Source: Iphione sp. A-MEVVRFRX5
Lineage: Eukaryota
Assembly (NCBI GenBank): GCA_976226885.1
Contig: OZ320320.1
Location: 88,288,001 to 88,352,000 of the forward strand
DNA: 64,000 nt
Reading direction: 5' to 3'
The translations under genes were made by a program, and so were the position numbers. Numbering within the stretch: position 1 is the first letter of the stretch; every line of letters starts with the position of its first letter. The notes under the pieces were generated by a model. It was not told the origin of the DNA. It did not search any database and saw only the letters and a program-made list of their open reading frames with translations. Below are positions 7,885 through 45,130 of this stretch, piece after piece.

Positions 7885-8089
7885 CCCTTTCATCATGAAT
7901 CGCATGTATTCTTCTAAAGAGACTTTGCCATCACCATTGGTATCAGCTTTCTTGAATACTGAGTTGAGTTCCTCCTTTCTTTCAGCTGGCATAAACTGAA
8001 AAATCCATGCAAGATCCTCCTGTGTTATGAAACCATCACTGCAATCCATGGTATCATAATAGTTAAACTCCTGCTGGATAACATATGCT
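7885..8089 (-). CDS. EF-hand Ca2+-binding protein, exon with two EF-hands (AYVIQQEFNYYDTMDCSDGFITQEDL...FKKADTNGDGKVSLEEYMRFMMKR)
   Basis: Acceptor ttttttccAG at 8090-8091; canonical loop DTNGDGKVSLEE; phase matches the upstream exon. The 3' boundary is uncertain (GTAAAC donor at 7884, or read-through to a stop near 7730). Confidence 0.85.
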
Positions 8090-9214: not shown

Positions 9215-9329
9215 ATCAACATATGGACCTGGAGCAAAGCCTAACATTTCTTCGAGCAAGGGAACCAATTCTTCCCTACTGAGGCCAAATTTCCCATCAT
9301 TATCATATTTTTTAAAGATTGATTGCAAC
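9215..9329 (-). CDS. EF-hand protein exon (LQSIFKKYDNDGKFGLSREELVPLLEEMLGFAPGPYVD)
   Basis: gtattttAG acceptor, GTAAGT donor, 115 nt, phase 2 to 0, EF-like loop DNDGKFGLSREE. Confidence 0.9.
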
Positions 9330-10065: not shown

Positions 10066-10157
10066 TTAGCTGTACCAGACTTCCTAAGTGCCAAATCAAG
10101 CTCCTCGAGGCTGTTGATTGTACCACTGCCATCCATATCAGCAATGAGCATTACCTC
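10066..10157 (-). CDS. EF-hand protein exon (EVMLIADMDGSGTINSLEELDLALRKSGTAK)
   Basis: ttctcttttAG acceptor, GTTAGT donor, 92 nt, phase 0 to 2; paralogous to exon 8585-8676. Confidence 0.9.
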
Positions 10158-10187
10158 CTAAAAGAGAATTACCTTCAGAATGATATA

Positions 10188-10365
10188 CAGTGGAACCTCT
10201 CTACTATGGGCAGCAAAGGGACTGACTCAAAAGTGTCTATAAAGAGGGGTGTCCTTTACAGAGGGGGTATTTAAACATGCTTATATAGATTTGGTTCTGT
10301 TTCCAGCCTGTCTATAGTAGGAGGTGTCCTTTATAGAGGGTGTCCTTAGTAGAGAGATTCTACTG
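10188..10365. mobile_element. Tc1/mariner-pogo-type MITE (178 bp)
   Basis: TIRs CAGTGGAACCTCTCTACTA / TAGTAGAGAGATTCTACTG (17/19 match), flanked by TA on both sides. Confidence 0.9.
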
Positions 10366-10999
10366 TATTTAGTCATAATGCTCTGTTGGCAGCAGTCCAA
10401 TGCTGCAGGATAGAATATTTCAGTGAGGACAAGAAAACAACAGAACGTGTTATGCAACAGACGACAATGCAATATTTATATTCATGCTTAGGAAAAAATG
10501 CATGTAGCAGTCATATCGATTTAACAAAGTTATTTGGAAAGTTCCCCTTACTTTGAACTGAAGGTAATGTAGGAATTCTACTGCATCTGATAAAAGCGAG
10601 ATAGAGATTGTCTTCAGTGCAAATGCTATATTGTGGTTTCTATGTGATATAGTTGCAGTAGAAACTCAGCAGAATGTCAACCAATGTGAAGACCCATTCT
10701 TGATAAAAAGCAAGATTTTCAACTACCAACATTCTTAATAGTACTAAGTCTGTATAAGGTTTTTCTCGGCGAGAGCAGGGCACAAAGTGACGATACACAA
10801 AATAGTTCTGCCCGAGAGAGGGGCGAGAGCCATCTGGTGTCAAATTGTGGAGATACCCTGTTACCCCACCTAGGGTAACCCACCTATGTTGAGATATAGT
10901 AATAGTAATAATCAATTACATGAGGATATGACATTGCATTTGCGTGCGCCCATCATGCGTGTCACCAAATCTCCGAACGATATGTACTTACTGTGAAGT

Positions 11000-12400
11000 A
11001 TGTGTTTGGAATAAATCGTTTTTGCAATTAAAAATATACCTTACCATAGTTTTTGATGTTTTCAATTATAATCTCATACTGAAGGAGTGTGTGGAGTACG
11101 ATATGGGTAAACCACACTTCCACTGATCAGACCATATTTGTCTAACTGGTCCCAATATGTGAAATGCAATAATAATGTTTCAACTATTGTGCCAATGAGG
11201 TCTGGGGTCCCACACCTAATTCTTACGGGGCCCTTCCTCTTCTCTATGGTAGTAAATGACCCGCTTAATTCTCAATTAGTAACTAAATCACTGTTATATG
11301 CTGATGACATTACCATTTATATCACATCATCGAATGTAGTATCCCTCCACTTCAAACTACAGAGGGGCCTAAGAGATGCTTCGGTATGGGCAAGGGGGAA
11401 TGGTTTTTTATTAAATAGATCAACAAAAAATATGGGATTTGGTAAAAGTAAACCTTTTGACCTAGAGCTGTATCTGGATAATGCATGTATAAGGAAAGTT
11501 TCCAAATTTCTAGGCTATAATAATAATCAGTTGAATTGGACTCCAATGGCTCAAAAGGTAAGGAAAAAGGGTAAGGTGTTCGATGGCACCAATTTATTAC
11601 ACCAGGGGGCGACTCCAGGCAGTGTGCCCATTATAAACAGTAGCTCAGTAAGCTGGGTGTCACTGCTGGATTTGTTAGTAAGAACACGGCTGTATGTAGT
11701 ATGACCGTTGAGTGCGACTGTTGAGATTTAAAATCCAAACATGGTTGAAGTACAACTACAAGAGCATACAAAAATGATCAAAGAAATTATGAGAAGAATC
11801 CTAACAATGGAAAAAGCAACTCCAATTAGCAGAATAGCGACCAGAGTCAAGGATCGTCACACGGAAATCTGCAAAGAATCAAGAAGATGGCATCAAAATA
11901 GATACTCGGGACGAAGGCGAGGATGATGCCAATGGACAACCATAAGATGCCTACCTTCCCAACAATGAACCAGATTAAAGCAGCAGCAAGCACCCAGATG
12001 CAAGAACCGCTAGCCACCATGTACCCGAGCATAGTATCAGCCACAGGTAAGACTTCAGACAAATTCTCCTGCAAGTATGTCCACTTGACAAAAGGGGAGG
12101 AAGCAGAGATGGGGTGGCTCACTCTTCACCAATATGTGGCTGGTACTGTAGTATTAGTCTTGGGTAAGAATATCCCAAAGACAACAAGGATGTTATTCTT
12201 AATCACTTAAGCCTAAGAGGAGGCAGGAGCGTTACAGTGGGAGCCAGTCTTCCACTGGGTCACAGAACTGTGGGAGCAGATTATCTCAGGCAAGATATCC
12301 GCGGACCAGACACTGAACATTGATAGGCTTAAATGTAAAGCAGTCAATCCATATCTCTATTCTATCAAACCAACCACAAAACAAGAGAAAGGGGGCTCAA
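11000..12400 (+). mobile_element. Decayed CR1/L2-group LINE RT and C-terminal fragment
   Basis: LTIVFDVF (DLSKAFD-like), SGVP..GPFLF, LLYADD in ORF 11138-11704; degenerate C-terminus downstream. Confidence 0.8.
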
Positions 12401-12594
12401 TGATCTGCCCCGAGTGGCATGTGGCAAAGTGTGAGAAGAAAGAGGATCACCAAGAGGCATCCGTTTAATTTTCCAGGGTCTACGACCGGCCGAGCATTAC
12501 AGACCCGTAGCCAGGAAGTCTTATGGGGGGTATCTCAAATAAAAGAGGTGGAACTCTTAGCTAGAGAGGTGGAACTCCTGGTTAGACAGGTCTT

Positions 12595-12606
12595 CTTTCT
12601 TCTTCT

Positions 12607-12648
<42 letters not shown>

Positions 12649-12665
12649 CTCTCTCTCTCTCTCTC
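12595..12665. repeat. (TTC)n/(CT)n microsatellite
   Basis: Directly visible. Confidence 0.95.
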
Positions 12666-12999
12666 CTGGCAAAACTGGATTCAGACCATGGTCAATAAGT
12701 TGGGATCTCTGTGCGAGTGGGTGTGTAGGTGCAGACAACCATTATTTGTAATGTATGTGTATCCATGTGTGTTTGACTATCTCTCTTAACATGTGGAAGT
12801 GTCCGTGTATCTTTCTTATGGTAAATAGGCCTAGAGAGCTGGAACTCCTGGCTTCTCTGGGGGGTATCGGACGATACCCCCGATACCCCCTTGACTATTG
12901 GCCTGCATTATAGATTGTCAGGACAAAGGACTCGTTAAGATCTACAATGCTGTGAAGTCGTCAGGACTTCCAAATCCCACTAATATCTAACCTTAATTT

Positions 13000-15590
13000 G
13001 CAGAACTGGGACTACATATCAGCAACGACACACAGTTAGACGCAATCTTTCAGAGTGGTATTTAGTATCACTTTCAGTTAGGCTATACCTGTTTATCAGG
13101 ATAGCGGATAGCGGCGGGATTTTCCGCTACCTGAACCAACAGGCAAAAAGCTGTAGGCATGCCCGTTGGGAGTAACGACTAAACGAGGTTGGGAAATACC
13201 CTGCCAAGCTGTGGAGATGCCTCAACAATGCACTTGGTAGAGGCAAAGACACAGGGGAGGAATCTTACAAACTACCTGCTAATGAGGACTGGAAGAGAGA
13301 AAAGGGTGAGACCTTGGCACAGTCCTTCGACTCCTCCTTCGTAAAGGATGTGGAGGCCCTGGTACCTATAGTCCCACCCAAGGGGGCAGGTTTTGAGTTG
13401 GAGCCGCCATCACTGATTGAGGTGCGCAAAGGCCACAAAGCCATCAGGGATGTATGGCGCACCAACTCAGATACTAAAACCTGTACTGTTGAGATTTCCG
13501 GATTTCTGGAGGATCTATGAAATGGGGTGTTAGCCTAGCATATGGAAGGTTGCTAGGGTAACCCCTGCATACAAAAAAGGGCTCTCCTGGAGATCTGGGC
13601 AAATTTTAGCCTGTTTCAATTGTACCGCTCCCTGGTAAACTCTGCGAAAAGTTGTTTACCAGGGAGTTTATGGGTCATCTGAAAAGCAGGAAGGCTCTCA
13701 CAAGTTGCCAGAATGAGTTTTGCCCTGCCCATGGGATGGAGACAGCTTTGGTGATGTTGGTCAACATGGCAAGTGAACTGATGAATACACCTGTTTGCTA
13801 GTCTTTGATCTCAGAAAAGCCTTTGACCTTGTCCTCCATGAGACTCCACCGTCTCTGTTGCATGGGGGCGGGTCATAGGCTGTGCTATGTGATTGGACAG
13901 GAAGTGCCACAGGGCTCTATTTTTGGCCCTGTGGCATTTAATCTGGCTATAAACTCATTAGTTGAGTGCCTACCCAGGGGCGCAGTGTCAGTCATCTATG
14001 ACGAAGACTAATAGTCTCGGCCCGAGACCTCCTTAAGCTACGGCATCAGCTAAACATACACTAGATGCAGTGGCCAGTCGGTGCAATAAGGAGGGATTCA
14101 TCCTAAGTGAATCCAAATGTGCCCATTGCCCACTGGATAAAGCAAGGGGCATTGGTCTTGATCTCAATTTAAATGGTTCGCCACTCAAGATGGAGACAAA
14201 GCTACTGGGGCATAAAATTGGTTTCGGGCTGAGGATGAGAGAGAGAGAGTTGCCGTGAGGTAAAAAGAAGTACTTGGGCGACATCACTCAAAATCAGTTG
14301 AACAATGCTGTTCTTGCCACTCAGGGCCAGAATTACCCTCTCCTTCACCCTAGTGATGTCAATGTTCCAGTTCAATGGTGCGTTGTGCTTTGGCCTGCCA
14401 AGCTCTGTGGTAATAGACATTCAGGTGCATTTAAACTGCTGCACTAGACGGTGTCTACAAGGTAAGGATTACTTGTCAACAATGGCGAGAAAGTTTGACG
14501 TACAACAGGTCCATAACCTCATAAGGACAAGAAGTATCATTGCAATACACAACCAAGTAAGACTTGCAATGATACCCACTGAAGCTCCCACCAGGACAAG
14601 ACAAGGTGAGGGAGAAAGGGGTACGCAGTATAGAAACAACCTATGCTATCAGGGAGTGCGCCGTTAAGAGCCAATGGCGTTTTAATTTATGACCACATTG
14701 ATTTCTAACCGTTCCTACTACAGCCTGGTACAAAAGTATTAATTTCTATAATTAACAATTCAATAATCTATTTACGACCAAACTCACCATTACAACCAGT
14801 TGAGCTTTGTCCAGAGGGGTGGTTGTAAATAGAGTTTCAACTGTACATCCCCTAGGCAGTAAATTGCTAAGAAGGCTGGAAGTCACAGAAACTAACTAAC
14901 TCGTGCCTCACTTACAAACTACCAGAGTGGAAGGCCGGTATGCACTCTGTTCATGTGTCATACTACGGTAGAGTTCACGTGGGCAATTACAGTATGTAAT
15001 GAGGATGGATTTGGGGGTTAGATACAATCAGATGGAGTAACTTGACATATGGAAGGTGCTCCAGGTGTCCCTAGAATGGAAATCTTCTCCTCGGAGCTCC
15101 TTCAAGAATGTGATACTTAGGGCCTTATACGGCAGGGCAGTACACAGTAAAACACCTGTATACAGCTTGATAACTCTAATGTATAAGGTTAATATACCCA
15201 ACAACATTGTTGATGCAATTGCACCTTGTTCATTAACTGTGAGAGGTTTGAATAGTTTTTGATAACAGCCACTGATGTATAACCATAACCAGACAGCGCG
15301 CCCATTATAACTAGCAGCTTAGTGCGTCACCACTCAGTAAGCTGGGCATCTCTGCTGGATTTGTTAGCCACCTCCCCCCTGACAACTCGTTGTTGTTTTC
15401 ATTTGTGATTTACCCACATGTATATATATTACTAATCTTATGCTTGATGTCATTTGCCAACAGCTGTTTATATTGTTCTCCTCGTGAATTGTTCTGTAAC
15501 TCCATCTGTACTCAGAAAACCACCTATTTGAGGCGATATGTTGGCTGAATTAATAAAATCATTTTAAATCAAATCATTGGAATGTAGAAC
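13000..15590 (+). mobile_element. Decayed CR1/L2-group LINE (pre-RT, RT, C-terminus, long 3' UTR)
   Basis: FELEPPSLIEV, PVSIVPLPGKLCEK, DLRKAFDLV, EVPQGSIFGP..FNLAINSL and YDED (YADD-like); ends with AATAAA and an (AAATC)-like tail near 15550-15580. Confidence 0.7.
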
Positions 15591-15622
15591 CTTGAAATGC
15601 CTCCATTTACAGTATGCTTATA

Positions 15623-16122
15623 CAGAGGTTACTACAAAACCGAACACTCCAAAACTGAATTTCCCAAAATCCGAACGAATTTTGCAGGAACCAAATGTTC
15701 TTTACTATTTAGATATTCACAAAACTGAACATTTTTATCCGAAATACAAACAATTTTTCGATGAATTTGGATCATTTTGCAGATTTTTGGATGAATTTGG
15801 ACCTTTTCTGCCAATTTTCTGACAAATTTGGCTGCATTTTGACAATTTCGGGTGATTTTGCCTAAATTTTGCAGATTTTCAGACAAATATGGCCGAGTTT
15901 CAGCGATTTTCAGACAAATTGGCTGACTGTTGCCGACTTTCAGACAAATTTGGACGAATTTGGCTGACTTTGGTAGGTATGTAAAGTATTAAGGTAGGGC
16001 CTAGGGCCCTACGTAACACTAAATGTGACAATGGCCTTAGGCCTCTATTCGAAATCTGAATTTTCCGAAATCCAAACGATTTCAGCAGAAACGGCGATTG
16101 TTTGGTTTTTGAATATCCTCTG
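15623..16122. mobile_element. TA-targeting MITE with internal ~22-bp tandem repeats
   Basis: Imperfect TIRs CAGAGGTTACTACAAAACCGAACA / TGTTTGGTTTTTGAATATCCTCTG; TA flanks; repeated ttttcagacaaatttgg units at 15760-15970. Confidence 0.7.
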
Positions 16123-16499
16123 TATATATATATATATATATATATATGTCTCTTGTACACTAATCCTAGCCTAGAAATGGCAGATGTGATACTAGACGAA
16201 ATAAAGTGTGTGTAAGGCCATATGTGTTGGACTACTGAGTGTGATAATTAGAGTATGGAGTTTCTATATACAGTAACTATATGCACAGAATAACATGACA
16301 CCTCTCCTATAAAGACAAGGCCTGTATGTATAAGGCCTCCATAATGCCTCTAGTTTACTAATGATGGACAACCTAAAAATTGAATGCACCAAGTCCCCAA
16401 GGCAACTGTTAGTGGGTCCAAGATATATGAGGAGTGCAACTTATCTTAGGAGGATAATGGGGATATAATCATCAGAACAAATCTGAGTCTTTTCTTGTT

Positions 16500-16935
16500 A
16501 GGGATTTGCAAGAAAATTACAAGGAAAGGTAATAGGCAGGGTGGTGCTATTATAATAGCTCTAGAGAAACATCATTGTTCAAGTACAATTTCCAGTAGTC
16601 AGGTATTAGTAATTGGAACTCATTACCTAGTGACCTAAGATCCTTGCCAGACACACATGTGTTCAAGACACATTGTGCAAAACTACTGAATAAATGAACA
16701 GTAATAACAATCCAAGTGACCATATAGAACACTGGTATAGCACCAGATGTTTTGATGCCATACATCCTCTTAGGATATTTCCTGAATTGGTGTTTATCTA
16801 TTCTTGAATTGGTGTTTAACTCTTGTATTGACATCATGTGTTTGATAATTCCATCTATGTTGCACTGAGAAAATTTTCTGTACACCCTACCCTCTATGGA
16901 AGAAGTGTAATAAAACATTTCAAATTTTAATTTTG
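16500..16935 (+). mobile_element. LINE 3' end (ORF2 C-terminus + UTR)
   Basis: GISNWNSLPSDLRSLPDTHVFKTHC matches the WNxLP...FK LINE terminus; AATAAA near 16908. Confidence 0.65.
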
Positions 16936-16989
16936 GTTTCATTTTGAAAATTGTTTTACTATGGATTACTGGTACCAGTAAAATCCATC

Positions 16990-17480
16990 AACATTTGAAT
17001 TGAATTGAACTGAATTCCTGTTTATTGTCAATTCTACCATTATACATGAATAATGCTTCACAAGGTTAACATTAGGAAAACTTAATTCTATGATGTACAT
17101 GAAAGAGAGAAATGGCCATGACGATTAATAGCATTATATTTACAGTCACCTTGGCACCAACATTGGTTAGACAGAATTCGTTTTTTCAACTTTGAAAAAG
17201 ATGTCAATTCCTTATTTTCCATTGGCATCTCATTCAACCAATATTTTCCCAAATGAAGCCAGCTATCTCTGACACGTCTCTGTAGACCTGTCATAAGACA
17301 CAGGATTGTTTTCCCTTCCTCTGCATGCTTTTGTTTTCTGTTCAGCTTGAATTCTATGTCTTTGGTACATATTGTGTATATTAACTTTGCACTCAATTCT
17401 TGCAATCTCAGTTACCTGTTGCATACCTGTTCATCTGTACAGAGACACCCATCCCTCTTTGAATCCTAACATGAGTTTCA
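16990..17480 (-). mobile_element. LINE 3' end with (TTCAA)n tail
   Basis: WLNEMPMENKELTSFSKLKKRI C-terminal motif; AATAAA plus ttcaattcaattcaaat on the minus strand. Confidence 0.65.
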
Positions 17481-17860
17481 ACCTTTTACTCTATATTTTG
17501 ACTAGGGCATTTTAAATCAATCTATTTATTCCCAGGAGGAATGGGGCAATGTATGAAATGTGTGGTATGATCAATGTTTCAAACAACATCATTCTAGTGC
17601 TCTCTGGTACAGTACATCACAATTTACTAATTGTATATGCCCCATGTATAATTTTTTGACGGACTGTATTCACATGAATTTTCCATGACAGCTTTTCATC
17701 AATATGGTACCTGAGTATTTGTATGTTACTGACTCTTTTGATTCTTTTACTATCTAAAGCCATGTTTAACTATTAATATGTGTCTGTACCTAGGAAATGT
17801 TAATAAGACTACAGCAGGTGAAGAAAAGGTACAAAAAGTCTCACAATTAAGAATACTTAC

Positions 17861-17887
17861 TTTGGCATATGGGGTAGCATCATAGCC
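17861..17887 (-). pseudogene. 3' half of an interrupted EF-hand gene exon (GYDATPYAK)
   Basis: Ends at a perfect AAA|GTAAGT donor in phase 0, matching exon 10066-10157; GYDATPYAK parallels GFAPGPYVD, the end of exon 9215-9329. Confidence 0.65.
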
Positions 17888-17888
17888 A

Positions 17889-19929
17889 TCCGTGCGCCAC
17901 CTCCACCTGTGGCTAACAATGCCTTGCATGCACTGGTACCTGCCGCCGATGCCCAAGCACAAGCCGCTCTAGTTGCCATTCCAGCGGCACCTACAAATCG
18001 GGCAGAGGCCACAGCACCAGCAGCCCAGCAACAGCAGCAGCAGGCCAAACGAAGTACGTACCTGTATTTCTACCATTGAAGACAACTTGTATTGCTACTA
18101 CTGAAGACAATGTATCTTTTTTTTGTAGGCTGTGTCTGTTGAAAATAACATTGTCCCATTCGTAATCATTGTGTGAACCACATTCCAGGACGTTGCCACG
18201 AGGGCGTACGAACTCGAGAGGAGTTGCTCGACAAGGAGGTGGTCACTGCCGAGGCCAGATTAATGAATATGGCCAAAGATGACAAGCGAAGGGAAGATGT
18301 GGCCCAGACGCGCCTCGGCCTGGCGACCGAGGAGGTTAAAACGAAAGAGGCAGCTCATAAGGCCGAGGAGGCCAGGGAGGCCTTCTACAAGTATCTGCTT
18401 GAACGTGAGCAGCAGCGCGAGCGTCGTGAGGTGGAAGAGGCCAAAGCAAAGGCCGCGCAGGCCAAGGCCCAGAGGAAGTCTGCCAAGCTTGCCAGGCAGG
18501 AGACCATCGCCCGCCTCATCAAACTCCAGGCAGACGTTACGAGGGCACTCCAGCAGACGGCGACCGAACTCGCCGGCCACATCGCCGACCACCCGGACCA
18601 TGAGGTGACCCTATCCGTAATTATCTGTAATGTTGCTGTACGAATGTCTCTCAATATTGGAGCCCATTTAAACCACGCTCGTCCTCTAGGTACATTGGTA
18701 GTGGCGGCAGTTGGGGCGGGTTGTGTGCATGGACCTGCCGCCGGCGCGGTCGTATCTTTGCCAGCAAATCATCTCTCTGTTCCACCGCAAAATTGTGGAG
18801 AATGGCGGCTGCACTAACCATTTCCCCCACTCGGCCCGGCCGAAAGCACATGGTCTCGTGGAGCATACCAAAGCGGCGTTTGAGGACGCCGAACGTCTGC
18901 TCGATCAGAACCCTCGTATGGGTGTGTGCATTTTGGTAACGATTCTGGGCTTGGGTAAGCACTTGGTTACGGCGGTATGGTGTGAGGCAGCGCCTGTCGC
19001 AGGCATAGCCACTGTTTCCAAGAAGGTGTCCCGGGCCGACCACTGCAAATAGAAGAGAAGCGTACTATTGATACAAATTTTGAATGCATGTGTGTGTGCT
19101 GAAACTAACATAACGATTAAGTGTAAAGTGAGAGGAACTAATAATACAACTCGTAACGCTAAGTGTACCTACAGGGCAAGAGATAGTCATGGGTGAAATC
19201 GCAACCACGGAAAATGCGGGAGTCATGTTTGCTGCCCGGATAACAGGCAACGATGTCACGGATCCGCTGTTTGTGGTCGCAGATGGCCTGTGGGTAAGCA
19301 GACAGAACGTCACCGAGGTAACCGGACAGGTAACAAAAAATGCATGTGAAATAATGTTTACGAAAGTTTACCAATACGTAAGCTAACACTAGGCTGGATC
19401 GTAAGCACTAAAGGCATTACTAACCTGCACGTTGATGGAGTAGTGATAGTTCCTGTCGACGTATTCAGGGTGCCGTCCCTTGGGTCGAATGATCCGCACG
19501 TGTGTACAGTCCACCAGGCCAATTACGAACGGAAACCTTGCCTTCTCCCGAAAGGCCAGCATGATCTCGTTCAATTTGTCCGGGCGTGGTGGGGTCAGGT
19601 ACTCAGTCTTCATTGTGTCCGTAACAGCCATGGCAACCCGGTGGACTATGCGACACACGGTGGGATTGGACACCCTGATGATGTCCGAGACAACATCCTG
19701 GATGGCCCCTGTTGTAAGTGAAATGCAATGCATACGTTACTTGCTGCAGCCGCAACTTCACCCAAGATAGTTACGAATATATCTCTTATTTGTACAGGAC
19801 GAAGAAACGCGGGCCATGATTAGCACGGATGCCACCAGAGCACGCATGAAGGAACTGGAAAATTTGAAGAAGATGATGGACCAGGATGCGCAAGGGTGGC
19901 GCACAGATGACAGCGACAGCGACAACTAA
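17889..19929 (+). CDS. Harbinger accessory (ORF1/Myb-partner-type) gene, 3' part: exons ~17889-18053, 18189-18604 (or -18616), 19798-19929
   Basis: GT-AG intron 18054-18188 is phase-consistent; long coiled-coil (REELLDKEVV...ARLIKLQADV); last exon has acceptor ctcttatttgtacAG, reads DEETRAM...DDSDSDN*, and has AATAAA at about 19965. No Myb/SANT domain in the retained part. Confidence 0.65.
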
Positions 19930-20569
19930 ATATGGCAATGAATACAAATATTTCAATATTCAGAAATAAACAATCATCCCACTGTACGTTGTGTATCTGT
20001 CAGCCCTAACTTCATCAATACGAGAATATTAACATTGAATATGAAAAAGATGTACCAAGTCAGTAGAACTATTATAGAGCCATATGTAAGGAATAAGTGA
20101 GGAATATAGAAGTTATCGTATGAAGCCTATGTGCTACAATACGCCAATAGGAAATTCTTTTTTCACAGATTACAAAAAACTCACCTGTAGCTAGGTAACG
20201 TAGAAATAGCACCACCTGAATTAAGGGAGGGAGGGCCGGGCCTCGCTTGCGCCTTTGCTCAAGCCGTGGCGTCACGTAATCCATGATCCTGTAGATGTTA
20301 TGCGGGTAGAAGCGGTATTTCTCACATATTTCATCACGTTTCAAGGATTCTAGAGGGTTTTGGTAATCAACAAGGCGGCGGGTTACGAAGTCTTGCCCAT
20401 AAAAACGCCTCCCCCACCTCACCTCATTCATCTCAATCTCCTCCTCTTCCAACTCCTCGTAATCCGCCATTACGTCGATTCCAAGGTTCTCAGGATCCAC
20501 TGGATCACATTCCCGGTGATGAGTAGCTTCCATAACATTTTCGTAATCAAAATCACGAGCAAGATCCAT
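18651..20569 (-). CDS. Harbinger (HARBI1-like) transposase, 4 exons: 20569-20185, 19708-19425, 19287-19173, 19042-18651
   Basis: Phase-consistent GT-AG introns join LRYLATG-AIQDVVSD..VSNPTVCRIV, IGLVDCTHV, YSINVQ-AICD, YPGSKHDSRIF, LLGNSGY and RVLIEQTFGVLKRRF. Confidence 0.92.
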
Positions 20570-20851
20570 GGTGTACGTGTTGAGGATACGAGTGACAAAC
20601 TAGTACTAGCTTAAAACTCCCACTTAAACCGACCCATGGAGACGGTTTAAGGAAAGTAGGTTAAATCCACAATTAATACGTCCCACGCGGTATTACGAGG
20701 GTTACAGCAGAGCGCACTTTAGCTAATACCAGCTGGGTGGTCGTAACTTGCGGCTTAAGGCGTTACAGCAGAGAGCACTCAAAATTTACTGGTATTAAGT
20801 CGCGGTATTAGGGTTAATGAGCATCAATTCGGTGTTACAGCAGCCGGCCCC

Positions 20852-20880
20852 AAAGTATCCTTGACAGGTTAATTGCATGA
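20852..20880 (-). pseudogene. 5' half of the interrupted EF-hand gene exon (MQLTCQGYF)
   Basis: attgtttacAG acceptor at 20881-20882; joins in frame to 17861-17887 when 17888-20851 is removed. Confidence 0.5.
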
Positions 20881-20989
20881 CTGTAAACAATACTCAATTG
20901 CCTTACATCCATCTATGTCACAGTGACATAGGTCCAAGGTCTTGCACAAAATACAGATGATAAGTACTGATGGAGAATCACTATTGTGT

Positions 20990-23350
20990 CTTCATACACC
21001 ATAGCGGAAGTTACATAGACCAAGTCATGGTCTGTGCTGCTTATACAGCAGGCCTGTAGCATTAGACCATAAGGGAAGGCCTGTTTGCAGTGGTCTGGAT
21101 GGCTCGAGGAGTATGGTAGATGTATGGGTGGTACATAGACTGTGGTGTCCAGGAAGTTGATTTCTCTTGAAGACTTGAGTGAACCTGATGTTCCCGTGGC
21201 ACATATTCAGGTGTGTCAAGAATTGGTCAAGTTCGTTCTCACCATGTGGACCCATCGAAGATGTAATCGATATACTGCAACCACACGAGTGGTTGTAGGC
21301 AGTAGGTGTATACATATTCCCCCTCTAGATGGGACATGAACAGGTTTGCATAGGTTGGGGCAACTTGAGTGCCCATTGCTGTGCCTGAAACTTAGAGGTA
21401 GTGTCCTATTGAATCTGAAATTATTCAATCTCAGTACCATGCTCAATAATTGGCAGATGCTGTCTATACTAATGTCCCCTAGGTTTGCGTTTGAGCTGAT
21501 GAGGGCCTTGATGGCCGCTATACCTCCCTTGTGGGGGATATTGGTGTATAGGGAAGTCACATCCAGTGTGCACAGTATGGAGCCGGCAGGTAGGTGTTGC
21601 AGTCTATATATTTGCTTGAGAAAATCTGTGGTGTCCCTTACATATGACTTGATAGTACTCATAAGTGGTCACAAGATTATATATACTAGGGCAGATATTT
21701 TCTCCGTACAGTAACCATTTGCTGACACAATTTGGCGCTGGGGTAGTGGGATGAGTCTTTTGTGTATTGTAGGGAGCAGATAGAATTCCGCAGTCCTGGA
21801 CTTGTGTGTCAGGAGTTTAGGGAGTAGATTTTAGGGAATTTCACCGGAGATAACGAGGGGCCAGAGAAAGTTGTTGACCTTCTCTTGTGTACTCACGGGT
21901 CATATCACGGTCTTTTTTCTGGTAGAAGTGACTGTTGCTCAGTTGACGCTCTCCCTCCTTAATGTAGTCAGTCCTGTTTAGAATAACAGTCTCCCTCCCT
22001 TGTCTGCGGGCTATATGATAATGTCCCGGTAAGTTTCTTTATAGCTATAAATTCCCCTTTGCCCGTGTTTCCAGCGCGGTAGGTAGGGTCCACGCCTTAC
22101 ATGGTTGGAGTACATTTAATCTCCTAAGGTCTGCAACCCATTTTGGTGTAGATTCGGCGGTTATGGCAGATGATGAATGGGGGCCACTTACCTTAGTCCC
22201 TGTCCTGTGCTGTTGAAAAAGGATTTAAGCGCTATCCCCATAGACGCGAATTATCCGCACGCACAAAGTGGCGTGCTGCGTGCAGCCCGGACCATCCCGC
22301 AACAGGTGGCGGGGCCTATCCCCATGTACGCGAATTATTCGCCACCTCAGGTGGGCTGAGAACACAATAGAATATAACAGAATATAGTAGAAAAGATAGG
22401 AATTCAATGAGATATGCACAAAAAAACACATCATTTACACAAATTTGACAGGAATTCAGTGAGATCTGTACAAAAAACACATTACTTACACAAATTTGAC
22501 AGGAATTCAATGAGATCTGCACAAAAAACACATTTTTTACACAAATTTGACAGGAATTCAACGAGATCTGCAAAAAAAACACATTACTTACACAAAATTT
22601 GACAGGAATCCAGGTATGTATGCACACACACATACACACACACACACAAACACACCTCTTCCCAGCCCGCACAAGGTGGCGGGGTGCGGGATTCCCGGAC
22701 GAACATCGATCACCCCGCACGCAGTAGGTGGCGTGTGTGGGAAGTCCGCGCACATGGGTATTGTTCTACATTAACTGCTTGGTCCGGACCTCCCGCTGTC
22801 CACGCACAAGGTGGCGGGTGCGGAAGGTTCGCGTCTATGGGGATAGCGGTTTAATTCTGAGAGATCTGGCGAATTGACCCACGTGTCATGCTATGTCCCC
22901 TAGGTTGGGTTCCCCAGGAGTGGTGCAGAATTTCAGGCCTTTTTCTAGACCTTGGATTCATCTTCACTTAAGACACGATCGTATAGGTTCACTAGAGATG
23001 ACTCAAGTGGATAAGTTCCAGTAATTTTATCGCTGAAAGAATCACAAGGCAAGAGTGAACTGAATTGGTTTCAGTATACGTGTGTTCATCAGGTAGTAAT
23101 AGAATAGGTCTAGTCACTGAATGAACCCTTTCAGGTCTTAGTGCAGGCTGGGACATGGTGGTGCCCCAGGTTCCTGTGTCATGATGGGAGTTTGTGGCAG
23201 GGTCGTGGCTTGGATGGGCCCCACTCTAGTATTGGTCCTGATGGCGGAATGTGTTCTGTTCTGTTGAAAACGGATTTAATCCTGAGCACCACCACGTCAT
23301 ACACGCTTGCCTCGTTTTACTTTACGAACATTTTTAGAACATTTTCCAAA
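20990..23350 (-). mobile_element. Penelope-like element remnant (N-terminal domain + RT; no GIY-YIG seen)
   Basis: LEKGLKFCTTP..FARSLRIKSFF, SYVRDTTDFL, ILCTLDVTSLYTNIPH, LRLNNFRFN, FLDTTVY and YSSSHPDHCK are typical PLE motifs; frameshifted. Confidence 0.85.
22229..22850. mobile_element. TTAA-targeting MITE (Kolobok-like termini) inside the Penelope element
   Basis: Perfect 21-bp inverted repeat CGCTATCCCCATAGACGCGAA; TTAA at 22225-22228 and 22851-22854; internal ~46-bp tandem repeats at 22400-22610. Confidence 0.85.
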
Positions 23351-25959: not shown

Positions 25960-26800
25960 TGTGCTTGAGCTAAAGACCATGGCTGCTCTCTTTGCAGCTA
26001 GGGTCTGGCTAGTGTACAACATGTATGCAGGGTCAGATTTCCACGTTCTGAGACATTTATCTCCTCCTTTGTTGCACCTAGCACCTGTAAGGTGGGGGCC
26101 CCACCTCTCCTTAGATTATGGAGTGAGTACTTACTGCAATCTAGGCCCATGTCTTCGAGGGCCATGTTAAACACCCTTGCTACCTTTCTAGTGTCAAGCA
26201 GGCCACTGAACACGGGGTCACAGAACAACGGTCGATTAACATGTTTTGTGTGGACTAGGCTCATCATTTTCTTGAGGGCCCTTATTGGACACGTATGCTT
26301 GTCACCTATTTTTGGGATGAATGTCATCCATGGAGCATTTTTGTTGATGGTCTTTGACCATTTAATTCTCACCTTGGCTCTGTCTTATACAAACTCTATG
26401 TCGCCTCTTGTAAGCTGGCGGCTTGGTGAATATATACCTTTCTTAGCTAATACGCTAGACTGTCGCACCAACAAGGAGTAAATGAACAGGAACAAAGACC
26501 TAAACACAATGCCCAGTTGATCCAACCCTGAGAGGTATGTCATCAGGTTCTTCATTATTACTAGTGAGACTGGAAGTTTTCTGTCAACGTTATGGGCACT
26601 CATCTTTTCAATTGCCTTAAGAGATGTGCATACCGGGTTGGAGTCGTACACAGTACAAAACCATAACTGCAGCAGCCATAGTTTTTCAAAGGGCAGTGAT
26701 GTGCTGGGAAACAACCTGTGGGGTAAAGTAAATATTCAATTATTCAATGTACATGAGCACATCAGCCTGTAGGGATGCAGCCATTCGATATCATATTTTT
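25960..26800 (-). pseudogene. Tyrosine recombinase of the DIRS-order element
   Basis: YSLLVRQSS (R), CPIRALK, YSLHNLRRGGA (H-x-x-R), and frameshifted TWKSDPAYMLY (Y). Confidence 0.85.
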
Positions 26801-26853
26801 GGCAGTATCCAATGAACAAAGTGACCATCCTAGTCCTTGTTTTCATCGAGTCT

Positions 26854-28450
26854 TTAGTTATGGCCTGCTGTTGTCGCTGGGCTGCCGTTGCCACCAACGT
26901 CTGCAGCTTCGGATCTGAAATTAGAACACTTTGACACTGTTGACAAGTTCATGTTAGGGTTTTTAACAGGATATGAAGCCACAATTGCCCGAAATTTCTT
27001 AGCTTTATGGAATCTGGACATTGCATCTGCTACCATCATTTCGGCACCAGGTATGTGTCGAAATGTGCAATTTACACCATATTTAGCCTGTGTGTACCAG
27101 ATGGCCCTAGCAGCAGACAATATTCTGCTGTCTCTTCCCCTGCAAGATGTGAAAACCTGGATTGATGACCAATTGTCACAGAAAACTTCATATGCCTTAG
27201 ACCTGGACTTTGGGATGAACATAGCCACTGCTAGTGCCACATTGAAGGCCTCAATCTGTGAGATATGGGCTGATTGAAGAAATTCTGGAGTGTACATAAT
27301 ATAATACATCTGTTTGTTGTAAGCACCCATGCCTTCAATGCATGCATCACAGTAGATATTATCATCAGTTTCTTGTGCTGGAAAGAATGATATGCCATTG
27401 CAAGTTGACAGAAATTTAGTGAACCAGTTTAGGTCTGCCCTTTCTTCACAGCTGATGGACACAATCCTAGAATTGTCACTAGTGGCTAACCGATACTGCT
27501 GAAGTATCCTACCTAGGAATAATCGTGCAACTGGGACACATCTTGCCACATGGTTGACTAATCCCATGAAGTGCTGACATTCTTTTATTGACATAGACTC
27601 TTTTGTCAGTGTCTCATTACACTGGTGTAGAACCTTTTTTTTTCTTTAGGGATTGATAGGGTTTTGTTATTCAAATTAATAGTGATACCAAGCCAGGTGA
27701 GTACACGCATCGGTGGGGAACACTTGTGGGAGGTTACAATGAGTCCTAAGCCCTTAACTAGTTTCAAGGTACGTTTGTATGCCTGTTCAGAAACACTCAC
27801 AGGTGAAACAAACACATAGTCATCAAGGTATGGTAGGCCTGAAACAGAAGGGATTTCATGGGTTACTTTATTCACAATGTGCTCAGAAATGATTTGCATG
27901 TAGAGTGAGCTCATGCGCGTGCCAAATGGGAGACAATTATCGAAATAATACTATTTTTCAAATTTTAGGCCCAATAGAGGCCAGTCCAAAGGATTGGTGG
28001 AAAAGTCCCTGTACGCACATCTTAGGTCTATGGACCATATCAGAATAGGAACCTCATAATGATGGATAGCATTAACCAAGTCAAACGTTGAGGGAAGTGA
28101 TAGTTTGTATGAGATGTCAAAAAACATATGAGGTGGGATGAGATCATTCACCCTGCTTAAGCCATGTCAATGATGACACGGTGTTTGTCCTCAGTGGACT
28201 TGGGGTGAGTTGTGATAGGGCTCACAATCAACTGTGTAAATCAGTGGGCTTCATATGGGCCAGACAGGGCCCCAAGTGCTAACTCCTCCTGGATGTAGTT
28301 AGCGATGTGGTGTTGTACTTGATGCTGTAGGGGATAGTTTTTCTTGTGTTGTTGCGGCATACACTGCCCCACGTATCCCAATGGGAACCCATACTGTACG
28401 GCATCCTGGAAGAAGACATCATTGGAGGATGATGTCGAGAACATCTATCC
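26854..28450 (-). pseudogene. RT/RNase H of the DIRS-order element
   Basis: IDLRCAYRDF, DWPLLG and YLDD; RNase H motifs IYCDAC, HISQIEAFNV, VFCDN and ADAMSR. Confidence 0.88.
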
Positions 28451-29136
28451 CCAGGCGTTGAGGTGCAGGGCTGACTCGATGGGATGCCTAGCCTCTAGGA
28501 GGTTGGGAATGGCCTGTGGCCCTTACTATATTGTATGTGAGTAGGTCTGGGTTATAGTCAATTGCCATAGGCCAGGAGATGAGCCTATATACCATCAGGG
28601 AGTCCATGGCAGGCATTTCATGTGTGAATAGAGTGTTACCTTGAAATTGTTGAGAGTCCATCTCATCATCTGGGGGGCAGTAGTACCCTGTGACGTGCAT
28701 CAGCTGCTGAATCACCAGTCGTATTCTCGCCTGTGCTTCTGCATCTGCTCAACGTTCTGCCCTATAGGCTTGGCATCTGAGGGCTTGGTCTTCTTCTTGT
28801 TGTGACAAGCTTCTGGTTTGTGGTTGGACATCTTGTTCATCATGTAATAACAAATGGGACAGTAATGTATTAGTTTGTATTGGTCAAGGAAATGAAAGTT
28901 GGGGAGTGAGCACTTTCCTGAAACCCAGGCTGGGCAGATAGTGATTGATTCTCTCCCAACATTTGGGTGTTACATTGTGTAATATTCCCTTGCTGGGTAA
29001 TAATAAGACAGATTTAACTTAGTTTTCTACTCCTTTACTTCACTGCACATGTGGTGTTACTCCATGGCTCCTGGGTGGTGGTGTCTCACTCAATGTTCAC
29101 CCCTAACATGTTACCTGGTGGTACTGGTACACTACA

Positions 29137-29151
29137 TCCCTTCCTTTCTTC
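29137..29151 (-). promoter_or_regulatory. Polypurine tract GAAGAAAGGAAGGGA
   Basis: Abuts the 3' LTR on the minus strand. Confidence 0.85.
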
Positions 29152-29186
29152 AGAAACAAAACTTCCTATCATCCCTGACTTCAGAT

Positions 29187-30170
29187 CTACTTCAATACAC
29201 AGTCATGATGTCTTAAATGACCCAGTGTTCCTATACTACTGAGTTCATAACCTTCCTTTGATTTCACAGAGTACTGCTCACTGTTGAAATTAGGTGCTCT
29301 CTGTGAATCCTTTTTCTTCCCTTTCACATAAATGAATGTTGCCTCTGCTGTTCCATCATCTGTCTTTACCTTCTCATCCTCCATCTTCCTTGTTCTCTCC
29401 TCCCTTGTCACTGTTCTGTCCTCTGTCTTCACAGTTGCATCCTCCAACTTCTTTTTGATATTTTTCTTCACCTTCCTTTTCCCCTTCCTTTTCACATCTT
29501 CCTTCTCAGCTGTGCCAGAATGATGTCTGATGACGGCTTTATCACTTTTTTCACATTGGCAACATGGTAGCCTCCTCACTAGTTTGGCTCCCAGCCTAGT
29601 TGCCTCATTCACATGAGATTTCCTCTGGACCTCTTTCCAGTCCCAAGTGTTAGTGGATACATTGGAGTCCTTTTGTTGAATGTCAGTGTCATTCCCCTCT
29701 GCAGTAGTGGAATGCACTCTTGTTGACTCGGGTGGTCCCACCCGTAGCAAATTCAACCTCTCTGCAGTCCGTTTACCAAGTAGAGTCCTTCCAGTCCCCT
29801 TGATAACAGTAAACTCATCTCGACAATATTTCTTGCTTGCTGGACACACTATCTCAGCCTCAAATATTCCCAACACCTCTATGGGCTTAGCTTGCCCATA
29901 CGTAAATAGCTTCATGTTGGACAGTCGGGACACACACTTCACTCTGTTGCATTTCATCATGTTCCAGGTTGCCTTGTCCATGGTGTTACAGGATGCACCT
30001 GAGTCGATCAACACAGATCTCAGGTCAAGTCCTCCAACCTCCAGGTCAACCATACCATCCATCTTCTCTGCCCCTACTGCAAAGATGTAATCTCCATAAC
30101 CTCCAATCTGTCCACTGTTTGATGCACCATGATTCACTTGATATGTTGCAGGTTGGCACTGCCTAGTAGA
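29187..30170 (-). pseudogene. Aspartic protease fused by deletion to an integrase C-terminal remnant
   Basis: VLIDSGASCN protease motif; downstream TLLGKRTAERLNLL, then a lysine-rich integrase-tail-like sequence. Confidence 0.8.
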
Positions 30171-30175
30171 GATTT

Positions 30176-31553
30176 CCTGTCGGCGGCCCGGCTGCAGAGA
30201 ACACACGGTGTGGAGAGGATATCTGACATGGTGGAGTACAATGGGCTAATGGTGGTGCACAAACTATTCAAGGAAGGTCTCCTCGCAGCTGGGTCTCAAT
30301 CGGTCACAAGAGCAGGACGTGGCAGCAGGGGATCAACTGTGAGACCAAGGACTACTGCCTTTGCACGTTCACTGGCCTACAGGGGGGTCAGGAGATGGAA
30401 CTCTCTCCCGGAAAACCTCAAAGCCTTGAAAAGGCTACCGAGACTCGCAGTTCTAGATCTGGCTCAGTTGTGATCGCTACATGCGAGGAGGAAGTGATTG
30501 GGATTACTACATCCTGACAGGAGCATAGAACCGGTTGGGGTAGATAGAGATGCAAGACCTCCCTTAGTTTTGCGGTCGAGTACAGTTGTTGGTAGGGTTT
30601 AGACTATGTGAGTGGGCAATACTTTCTATTATGGAACAGGATTACAAAATTCATTGTGAACCCAAGCCAGATATAGAATTACTTTACTGAATTACAGGCT
30701 GATATAGAGGTACAACCATCAGTTACCGTAGGTAGGGAAAGGAACGGGAAATAATGGGGGGATGGGAAAGGTATAGGCTACTTCATGATAGTGTTACAGA
30801 TATTTCTCCTACTATCTTTTTTCCTCACAACATTATATACAACTGATCATGCTTAAAAGATCTGTCTAAGGATTCTCAACTGAGTTATATTGTTATTGAT
30901 GCCAACGTATTATACCTCAGGTTATTTATGAATTGCTGTGATATGGTGGAGGAATGAGTAATAGATGCAAAGAGTTAACTCTTAAATAAATATGCCTTTG
31001 CAATAGATGACAACGCTAGCCCTTGTAATAGACAATATCAAGAAGGGTAGGCTTTTTTAGATTGCTAGTGACTGCAATAGCAGCCACTAATGAAAACTTG
31101 CTTATATGCATAATGAGAAATACTCTCTGTTTATATGTGACTTCAATACGTAAAGTTAAGATATCGATTAAAGCAGTACCTGGTGTAATTTTTGTGAGCC
31201 AAATGTATGAGTGATATGTAACAGTGATAGCTGCCATTGTATAGCATGTAATAGTGGTGACATAGTTAAATTACATCTAGGATAAGTGAGAAACTGTTGG
31301 ACATGGCATCGTTTTCTTTTCTTCCTGTAGGATTATTGATGTCCACTGCATTTATTATAGTGTCTGACGAGGACAAATGTTGGAAGTTACTGTAACGGCT
31401 TGAAGCATGATTCTGTCTTAGATGTACCCATATTTTCAAAAATGTCTGTATGTACTAGCACTCAGAATGTTTCATGTTTGCGCACATATATGCCATGGAG
31501 AGCTCTGTAACCTGGAGATGGCAAATAAACCCAATTCCAATTCCAATTCCAAT
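30176..31553 (+). mobile_element. 5'-truncated LINE (ORF2 C-terminus + ~1.1-kb 3' UTR) inserted between the gag knuckle and the protease
   Basis: RSLAYRGVRRWNSLPENLK terminus; AATAAA plus (CCAATT)n tail at about 31523-31553; possible TTTCC-type TSD. Confidence 0.75.
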
Positions 31554-32497
31554 TTTCCCTCTTCTTGGTACTTCTCCCTCTGTCGTCTCTGTCGAGTGTC
31601 TTGGCCCTTAGTGTGACAGCATACCGCAAAATGTCCCATTCTCCCGCATTTGCTGCATTCTTTACCTCGAGCAGGGCATTCCTGATCCTTTGCCAAGTGA
31701 TCTTTCTTGTTGCAGCGGAAACATCTCTATCCACTGCCATGTCCACTGCTTCCTTCTCTGGTTGCACCTCTGGCTCCCTTGTGTTCTTCCTTGTTCCCCT
31801 TTGAGAAGTTACCCTTCCTGTGTACTGCATTCACTTCAGTTGATGCCTCAGTCCGAGTCATCGACTTCATCTGTGCCTCAACTGCTTCGTAGGCACGTGC
31901 GATGTCCTCCAAGTCCTTCAATGTAGCATTCCCTGTCTTCTCCAAGAACTTGCGTCTCAGCCGCTGTTCCCGACATTTATCTATCAGCTGATCACGGATA
32001 GCCTCATCAACATCCGTGAACTCACAGGAAACGGCCTTGTGGCGTAGGCGACACACAAACTGATCGACTGTCTCCCCAGCTCCCTGCTCAAGCTGACGGA
32101 ACAGGTGCCTCTCGAACGGTATGTTCACAGTCGGCACAAAGTGTGCGTCGAGCCGACCGATACACTCCTTGAGGGACATGCCAGTCTCCTCAGGTACCAG
32201 AGTGTAGAATATCTTCTGTAGTTCCATACCTCCAGTGTGTAACAGGAGAGCAACCTTCTGCTCCTCCACAGTTACACCACGTGACATCACATACAGGTTG
32301 AAAGCTCGCTTCCAACGCTTCCACCTTGCGCACAGAGTAGTAGGTTCTCCCTTGGGGTCAAAGCAAGGAAGACTACTCACCTCCAGTGTCCTTAGTCTAT
32401 CAACAGTACCATTAACATTACCAGTGCTGGCACCACCGCTGGAACTACTGCCACTTGCACGCTCAGCCATACTGCGTGTCTCTGTCGGTGCCATCAT
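31472..32497 (-). pseudogene. gag of the Mag-like element with CCHC zinc knuckle (frameshifted)
   Basis: RWKRWKRAFNLYV, LLLHTGG, FERHLFRQLEQ..ETVDQFVCRLR, IRDQLIDKC; CSKCGRMGHFAVCC. Confidence 0.9.
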
Positions 32498-33927
32498 GAA
32501 TCCAGACCAACACAGTATCTAGCTATAATATTTGAACCAATATACCACCACAGTATTTAAACAAAACCAGGTACCACCAAACTCAAACTCGTAGGCTACC
32601 TATACATATAATGCACCAACCACCTGAAAAACTAAAATATTGTCAACCACAGGATCAATACAAAGTTCAGGCAAACATACAGGTACATGTACACATTAAA
32701 GTAAATATTCCTGAAATAAAATGACAAAGTTAATGTCACAACAGGTTCTAGACCTCTGAATTAAATCAAATGTCACTTTTAGTGCAACCTCTGATACCAG
32801 TGGTATAGTCAGACTCCAGCCTCTGTAAAACTTCCAGTATTTAAACTTCAGTCATCACATGTCAAAGTTCAGTATTAAAACTTTGCACATCAAAGTGCAC
32901 ACATAAATGTTCAGTATTTGTCAAAATTCTGTATTTAAACTCCATTTCCACCGTTGTAGATAGACTGTGTTGCTTGCCAGGTTATTCTCCCGAGGTTCCC
33001 AAGCTCCTAGACAGTCCTGGCTGACTTAAAACACAAAAATCGATCATATGACAGCACCAGTCACTTCTCAGGCGTTCCCATCTTTGTAGATATTCCTTGC
33101 CGACTTTTGAAGACTTGTTGTACACTGGCACGCCTCCTCTGGGCTCCCACACTTGTAGACAGGTTTGGCCGCTTCTACTTCAGTATTTAAACTTTGCCGC
33201 TTCTCCTGATCAGTCTCTTCAGGTTTCCACACCTCCAAGACAACTCTGCCGACTTTACTCTGTATTCAAACATCGTTTCCACACTTGTAGATAGTCCTTG
33301 CCGACTTTTGACAACTTGCTTTACACTGCCACGCCTCCTCTGGGCTCCCACGCTTTCTCGATAAGTTCCGCCGACTTTGACAACTTTTGCGGGCCTTGAC
33401 CCAGAGTGACCACGCCTCCTAGGCTCCTCCAGCCGCTACCCACGCTATATTTTCGCGCCAATGTCGTCACTAGAGCGTCCTGGTTGGCTCCCACACCCTC
33501 CAGTGGCCTACCCACGCTATTCTGGCGCCAAAACGCCGACCACTGCATCCTCCGTGACTCCTCAGGGATTTGAGCCTCTCTGGCCAGCCTAGCGTGGTCC
33601 ACTAGCCTGTACCACGCTCCCCAGTCACTCAAACAAAGATGGCGAATATCAACGTGATCAAACACTCCTGGCTTTACCATCACAATGCCACACAAATAGT
33701 TACTCACATATGCACAATAGTCCCTCTTCTGTGTCTGTCCACAATCCTGTTGATGTGTCCTCTCTCCTTTCCAATGAAATCCAGCATTTAAGCTCAGTGG
33801 GGTTGTACTCCCTCACTCCTCCTTTGTCTGTGGGTACCTCCTCACATGGCAGGCAGAAAACTTGTTTCCTTGGTAAATCCCTGTTTAGGACTCACTCAAA
33901 ACTTGTTCCTTGGTTTCTCCTCATGTT

Positions 33928-44982: not shown

Positions 44983-45130
44983 NNNNNNNNNNNNNNNNNN
45001 NNNNNNNNNNNNNNNNNNNNNNNNNNNNNNNNNNNNNNNNNNNNNNNNNNNNNNNNNNNNNNNNNNNNNNNNNNNNNNNNNNNNNNNNNNNNNNNNNNNN
45101 NNNNNNNNNNNNNNNNNNNNNNNNNNNNNN
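44983..45130. other. Assembly gap (N run)
   Basis: Directly visible. Confidence 1.

Follow-up and report, generated by a model that had tools for sequence, protein, structure and literature searches.

Genes that lie beside DNA transposons can be truncated by transposon-associated flanking deletions, in which end joining unites two breakpoints, one of them inside the transposon. Multi-EF-hand gene families, for their part, can be built of duplicated two-exon modules. Among the DNA transposons of animals, the NuwaI group of the PHIS (PIF/Harbinger-ISL2EU-Spy) superfamily has a 5'-CWG-3' duplication and terminal repeats that start with GGG, and its autonomous candidates have an average length of about 4.5 kb (PMC4482050).

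We analysed a stretch of 64,000 nucleotides from Iphione sp. (contig OZ320320.1, positions 88,288,001 to 88,352,000; hereafter the window), in which a Harbinger-type element meets the coding sequence of an EF-hand gene. The element resembles NuwaI in its DDE_Tnp_4 transposase, in its GGG-starting terminal repeat and in the C-W-G read at the right terminus of 29 of 29 other copies. It differs from NuwaI in length, since full copies exceed 8 kb against the average of about 4.5 kb. In addition, the copy in the window lacks one end, carries CAA in place of CWG and had no Myb/SANT partner gene among the ORFs searched. As in known flanking deletions, the element ends exactly at its terminus on one side, and on the other it is broken internally and meets the host DNA at a short overlap, next to which host sequence is gone; the difference is that the event is known here from its end state alone. 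The host gene resembles multi-EF-hand families in its sister modules (exons V+X and Y+Z, with the same phases), in an exon W that encodes an EF-hand pair, and in 24 further matches to W that follow the same exon plan where checked. It differs in that the member in the window is without its first EF-hand, and the family is assigned as EF-hand only. The locus is an ordinary case in which one of about 25 paralogues has been truncated in association with a transposon.

The host gene and its paralogues

The following parts of the host gene were identified in the window, all of them on the minus strand.

17861 to 17887, minus strand: remnant of exon V, consisting of its final 8-9 codons (GYDATPYAK), with the donor GTAAGT next to it; host and element have the Gly codon at 17885-17887 in common
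17746 to 17860, minus strand: opening 115 nt of the intron downstream of exon V, over which paralogues are still alignable
10066 to 10157, minus strand: exon X (EVMLIADMDGSGTINSLEELDLALRKSGTAK), with an EF-hand loop and intact splice sites
9215 to 9329, minus strand: exon Y (K/LQSIFKKYDNDGKFGLSREELVPLLEEMLGFAPGPYVD), sister of exon V, 38 codons with an EF-hand loop
8585 to 8676, minus strand: exon Z (EVMQAGDQNGSGTIDTMEELQIALDETNAIK), sister of exon X
7885 to 8089, minus strand: exon W, the last exon, with an EF-hand pair and the stop codon; EF-hand_7 (PF13499) scores 45.9 bits (cutoff 30)

Exons X, Y, Z and W had canonical splice sites and compatible phases, and all of them were open. Taken singly, exons X, Y and Z gave EF-hand matches below the Pfam threshold, which is expected for pieces of 31-38 residues. 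The module V+X is duplicated as Y+Z with the same intron phases, and GYDATPYAK with its donor gtaagt (17887-17861) is the counterpart of GFAPGPYVD with the donor gtaagt in exon Y. An earlier reading of this DNA from its letters alone (the sequence-only reading) had drawn this parallel with the duplicated module, and our results agree with it, the two modules being sisters.

When the genome was searched with exon W, 25 matches were obtained, the window's own exon included, and the results for X and Y were much alike. By these matches, the host gene is a member of an EF-hand family with about 25 members. The gene plan is compact and is conserved where checked in the family, and the introns align too, at 66-70%. 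A hidden exon was considered at the conserved block 17746-17860 and was rejected, because the family introns align at this level throughout. No named orthologue from another species was recovered in searches that used the exons singly rather than as a joined spliced protein: phmmer of exon W against 1.8 billion representatives returned multi-EF-hand repeat proteins, mostly bacterial, a word search for an exon W orthologue gave no match in the searched length range, and the ESM Atlas search gave generic EF-hand clusters.

Exon V lacks its 5' part in the window

Exon V was compared with its paralogues by coordinates, coverage and identity values, not by base-by-base alignment. DNA from window positions 17000-17884 matched six paralogous loci, with 70-74% identity across 17746-17884, and the similarity ran to the final base preceding the element. 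At the same loci, a search with exon Y found a V-type exon that matched Y from residue 1/3 to residue 37/38, uninterrupted and in an open frame of 51-96 codons. The 3' end of the V-type exon lay 23 nt inside the DNA block, at the equivalent of window position 17861, in all four loci compared (C13:100319457, C19:78849410, C17:88529423 and C11:1725260), and a V-type exon was present in each of the three paralogues whose exon X is nearest to that of the window (87% identity). Because the uninterrupted paralogue exon ends at the equivalent of 17861, the donor at 17861 is genuine. Judged by the paralogues, the ancestral exon V was a single exon of about 38 codons that included a calcium-binding loop, and the window's exon V is without its 5' two thirds (about 87-90 nt, or 28-29 codons, including the EF-hand loop). 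The missing codons were absent beside the element and elsewhere in the 64 kb, where a Y-type exon profile run over all ORF pieces found only Y and, weakly, W.

We then considered the DNA beyond the right end of the element, where the following features were found.

20869 to 20973, no strand assigned: copy of a repeat that is dispersed and not related to the EF-hand family, with 13 matching loci at 73-81%, all of them away from the EF-hand paralogues
21022 to 21750, minus strand: retroelement fragment with reverse transcriptase, seen from ORFs and 350 first-look candidates at 67-76% identity

The region 20852-21021 had no match at any EF-hand paralogue, and 20852-20960 likewise had none at E<=10, where the dispersed repeat was all that came up. 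The part of exon Y equivalent to the missing part of V (88 nt, 9242-9329) served as a positive control and found five paralogous Y exons at 78-85% identity (E 4e-20 to 4.5e-12). Since the control detected five paralogues, a surviving 5' part of V should have shown up. Matches to the dispersed repeat mostly began at 20885, and two began at 20869; the DNA from 20852 to 20868 or 20884 was unique, with no source found in the genome matches. In another frame, the peptide DIDGCKAIEY (about 20922-20893) was tried as a frameshifted EF loop and rejected, as it lies inside the dispersed repeat and gave no exon-profile signal.

These results bear directly on the sequence-only reading, which had claimed that a Harbinger transposon landed in a coding exon of the EF-hand gene and that its removal restores the exon without loss. 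The element does abut and disrupt exon V, but this is not a clean insertion, as the 5' part of the exon is gone. Restoration without loss is refuted: exon V of the paralogues runs about 28-29 codons further, and the far side is without homology despite a working control. Nor were the two flanks contiguous in uninterrupted homologues, as a precise insertion would require, since the left flank aligns to six paralogues and the right flank to none at E<=10.

For the insertion to have been precise, the element would have entered a short exon (acceptor at 20881/20880) between ...GGATACTTT and GGCTATGAT... and later lost its left end without any loss of host DNA, so that excision would restore MQLTCQGYFGYDATPYAK. 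The joined sequence itself was read correctly: minus-strand 20852-20880 plus 17861-17887 gives ..MQLTCQGYFGYDATPYAK followed by GTAAGT, and its frame is compatible with exon 10157-10066, as had been claimed. The joined frame is open for 14 codons behind a plausible acceptor (tgtttacag) and contains an ATG, and most of the repeat matches stop at 20885, just beyond the proposed exon. However, the stop 14 codons upstream of the junction falls short of the roughly 29 codons needed, and exon V of the paralogues matches as one unbroken stretch of about 36-38 codons inside an open frame, so that no intron is needed there. The EF-hand loop would be missing, and no upstream exon carrying it was found in the window. 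When V and Y were anchored at the junction, they shared 16/27 nt and 3/9 residues 3' of it; 5' of it the figures were 9/29 nt and 0/10 residues, where about 4 residues would be expected to match. Moreover, the proposed 5' half lies beside the dispersed repeat and partly within it, and a later deletion that halted exactly at the element-host border would be improbable. The empty-site 21-mer GGATACTTTGGCTATGATGCT was not found in the assembly, even with as many as 2 mismatches tolerated. We consider that a precise insertion has very little chance of being the explanation.

A left-truncated copy of a Harbinger-type family

The features of the element and of its two junctions were as follows.

17885/17888 to 20850, minus strand (that of the transposase): PIF/Harbinger-type DNA transposon, left-truncated copy, keeping the right-hand 2.97 kb of an element of more than 8 kb
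18651 to 20569, minus strand: transposase gene (DDE_Tnp_4) in four coding pieces, 20569-20072, 19733-19389, 19389-19159 and 19043-18651
17888 to 18600, plus strand: 3' portion of one of the element's genes, seen as ORFs; the break cuts a coding exon
20831 to 20850, minus strand: right terminal inverted repeat, GGGCCGGCTGCTGTAACACC, the exact family terminus
20851 to 20853, no strand assigned: place of the family's putative 3-bp target-site duplication, CAA in the window
17885 to 17887, no strand assigned: 3-nt overlap, GCC on the plus strand, between the host exon and the element interior; it fits both alike

The transposase was recognized by Pfam profile search, in which piece 19043-18651 matched PF13359 (DDE_Tnp_4) with 56.7 bits (cutoff 24.8) and the two pieces before it gave weaker matches to PF13359 in the correct profile order. 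All four pieces (4/4) were open in the window copy, without stops, and had 91-97% amino-acid identity to those of other copies. A right-end probe of 331 nt gave at least 224 first-look candidates in the genome at 98-99% identity, and a left-boundary probe gave at least 153 at 87-95% identity. Over longer stretches, the window copy was 93-98.5% identical to other copies. By these copy numbers and identities, the family is young and high-copy, and it looks active.

On the plus strand, the full copy L063 has an equivalent exon at 4481-5227 that spans the break point of the window copy. No Pfam match was obtained for the plus-strand ORFs of the window copy or for seven ORFs in the left 5 kb of L063; this is a weak negative, because the exons are spliced and the leftmost part lay outside the search. 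A second gene, for a Myb/SANT/MADF DNA-binding protein, was not found among the same two sets of ORFs.

The right boundary of the element, at 20850/20851, was sharp: 29 other copies end identically (GGTGTTACAGCAGCCGGCCCC) and then continue into unrelated flanks. The terminal triplet was C-W-G in 29/29 other copies, and the window copy, with CAA, was the sole exception among 30. If the C of CWG is counted as part of the duplication, the terminal repeat starts with GGG and reads GGGCCGGCTGCTG.... At the left edge, similarity to all the other copies begins at 17885, and the left inverted repeat is absent from the window copy. In 29/29 other copies, GCC(A/G)TCCGTGCGCC is preceded by the common leftward continuation ...cggcaatacgaat, and the window has none of the sequence left of GCC. 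Eight copies followed for 8-8.5 kb were still mutually homologous at the far edge, so full elements are longer than 8 kb; in these eight copies, an inverted partner of the right terminus (up to 3 mismatches) was not found within 8 kb.

The left end of the window copy is a break inside the element, not a family terminus. The boundaries of 17888-20851 given by the sequence-only reading were correct within 1-3 nt, as we found 17885/17888 and 20850/20851. Its view that the element had lost its left terminal repeat and was immobilised was borne out as well, since similarity to 29 copies begins inside the element, at 17885. With its left terminus lost, the stub in the window cannot transpose by itself. 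At the break, the host codon is GGC (Gly), which is conserved in the sister exon Y; that GCC can be assigned to host or element is a signature of end joining.

Proposed origin of the junction

The element is truncated, exon V is truncated, and homology to the paralogues is absent on the far side. We think it probable that an end-joining rearrangement, most simply one deletion, joined the interior of the element to the interior of exon V and so decapitated the gene. A Harbinger-type (NuwaI-like) copy would have integrated upstream of, or in, the first EF-hand exon, exon V. One breakpoint would then have arisen within the element and the other within exon V, and the two would have been joined at the 3-nt overlap GCC. 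The deletion would have taken more than 5 kb of the left side of the element, including the left terminal repeat, together with whatever host DNA lay between and roughly 87-90 nt from the 5' side of exon V. With that part of exon V the codons of the calcium-binding loop would have gone, and perhaps the beginning of the coding sequence as well. What would have been left behind is an immobile stub with an apparently intact transposase, next to a 5'-truncated gene whose exons X, Y, Z and W are open. A single deletion is most likely behind both truncations.

The still open exons X to W, together with the low divergence of the element copy from its relatives, fit a recent event. The EF-hand gene is most likely inactive now and most likely a recent pseudogene. 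A knockout was one of the outcomes put forward by the sequence-only reading, and we count it as the likely one, with exon V truncated and the first EF-hand gone.

The CAA flank is the one observation that is not directly explained by insertion followed by deletion; with it, a plain canonical insertion needs a later G-to-A substitution or an atypical target. It has also led us to consider that an already broken Harbinger piece, with one transposase-cut end and one random break, might have been ligated into a chromosome break by end joining and not by the transposase, the 5' part of exon V being lost in the same repair or earlier via neighbouring repeats. CAA at the intact end, against CWG in 29/29 transposed copies, is what would be expected if the transposase did not choose the site. 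The 3-nt overlap at the other junction is in keeping with such a capture, and so is the finding that no target-site duplication was identifiable around the window copy, with no CAA/TTG repeat at 17885-17890. On the other hand, a single substitution from CAG to CAA explains the flank as well in a copy that is 2-6% diverged, and capture requires two events or one complex event. The present data do not separate capture from simple deletion, and we regard capture as unlikely, though it deserves to be kept in mind. Under both histories the gene has lost host coding sequence, namely its first EF-hand together with anything that stood upstream of it.

A trivial cause would be a mis-join in the assembly, connecting the interior of the element to exon V through the high-copy repeat, given that hundreds of near-identical copies of the element exist and that the junction lies inside it. 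Yet the stub runs unbroken to its unique right flank, and no run of N is near, the closest being at 44983 and 49476. Biological junctions also typically look like this one, with a 3-nt overlap located at a unique point of the exon. The chance that the junction is an artefact seems to us very small.

Possible fate of the locus and its meaning

The transposase and the host gene are co-oriented, both on the minus strand, and in the ORF list the frame ...SHRWRWRTDGYDATPYAK runs without a stop out of the element as far as the donor; the sequence-only reading was right on both points. A chimeric reading leans on this orientation, on the apparently intact transposase and on the still perfect donor at 17861. 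The stub might have been co-opted, in that a transcript from or through the element would yield a chimeric EF-hand protein whose N-terminus comes from the transposon and which has five calcium loops rather than six. Translation would begin at the ATG at 17929-17927 and continue through QGIVSHRWRWRTD and the nine surviving codons of exon V to the donor at 17861, which would be spliced to exon X. We hold such a co-option to be improbable.

For the preferred reading, a rearrangement that decapitated the gene, the meaning is mainly one of annotation. The "exon" at 20852-20880 should be left out of any gene model built here, and the locus is best marked as a copy that is truncated at its 5' end and probably dead. 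With its open transposase gene, the one-ended stub could still provide the enzyme in trans. An exact terminus beside a flank other than CWG is a hint of capture by end joining or of aberrant transposition, and it could be of interest if many one-ended copies exist. More generally, the locus would serve as a dated instance in which a deletion involving a young, active-looking family of the Harbinger/NuwaI type beheaded one gene of a redundant EF-hand family.

Genomic context of the EF-hand gene

The EF-hand family was found to be clustered in the genome assembly, with members at 78.63-78.85 Mb of sequence C19, 100.12-100.32 Mb of C13, 132.44-132.48 Mb of C2 and 88.53 Mb of C17. The C19 cluster contained at least 10 members inside 220 kb, and one family member, oppositely oriented, was located 180 kb from the window. 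On C13, ~167 kb separates equal-scoring matches (at 100149438 and 100316847), and on C2 the spacing is 31 kb; this pattern suggests recent segmental duplications.

The intron between the exon V remnant and the next exon, exon X, spans 7.7 kb in the window (10158-17860), whereas its counterparts in the paralogues measure only ~360-490 bp. Repeat insertions have evidently enlarged it; examples are the stretches at 11-17 kb, which are microsatellite-rich and carry ORFs.

At the junction of element and exon V, a 72-codon minus-strand frame (17753-17968) was open from the element, through the exon V remnant and beyond the donor. The element part of this frame is antisense to the element's plus-strand gene, an ATG occurs within the frame at 17929-17927, and a Pfam search of the frame returned no match.

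Elsewhere in the window, long minus-strand ORFs at 26000-32520 appeared retroelement-like by eye, among them the following:

Minus-strand ORFs, assigned by eye
32518-31475, minus, zinc-knuckle gag-like ORF
30245-26857, minus, protease/RT-like ORF
26384-26001, minus, ORF with a tyrosine-recombinase-like motif at its end

Since gag-like, protease/RT-like and tyrosine-recombinase-like ORFs occur together here, this region is possibly a DIRS-type element.

Full-length copies and terminus of the element

We followed eight copies of the element (L061-L068) for 8-8.5 kb each, and full copies exceeded 8 kb. Their left halves were variable, with large internal insertions and deletions between copies, and L061 was also truncated, at its own position 958. 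In the left 5 kb of L063, none of seven ORFs (91-248 codons) matched a Pfam family.

At the right terminus, C-W-G was present in all 29 sampled copies (L002-L030; window equivalent 20851-20853), and the terminal repeat started with GGG. The C-W-G at this end, with the GGG start of the repeat, matches the NuwaI signature of PMC4482050 and differs from the TWA of classical Harbingers. Reported NuwaI hosts are fish, beetle, crustacean, mollusc and anthozoan (PMC4482050). A high-copy family of >8 kb in the worm Iphione would therefore widen both the host range and the size of NuwaI.
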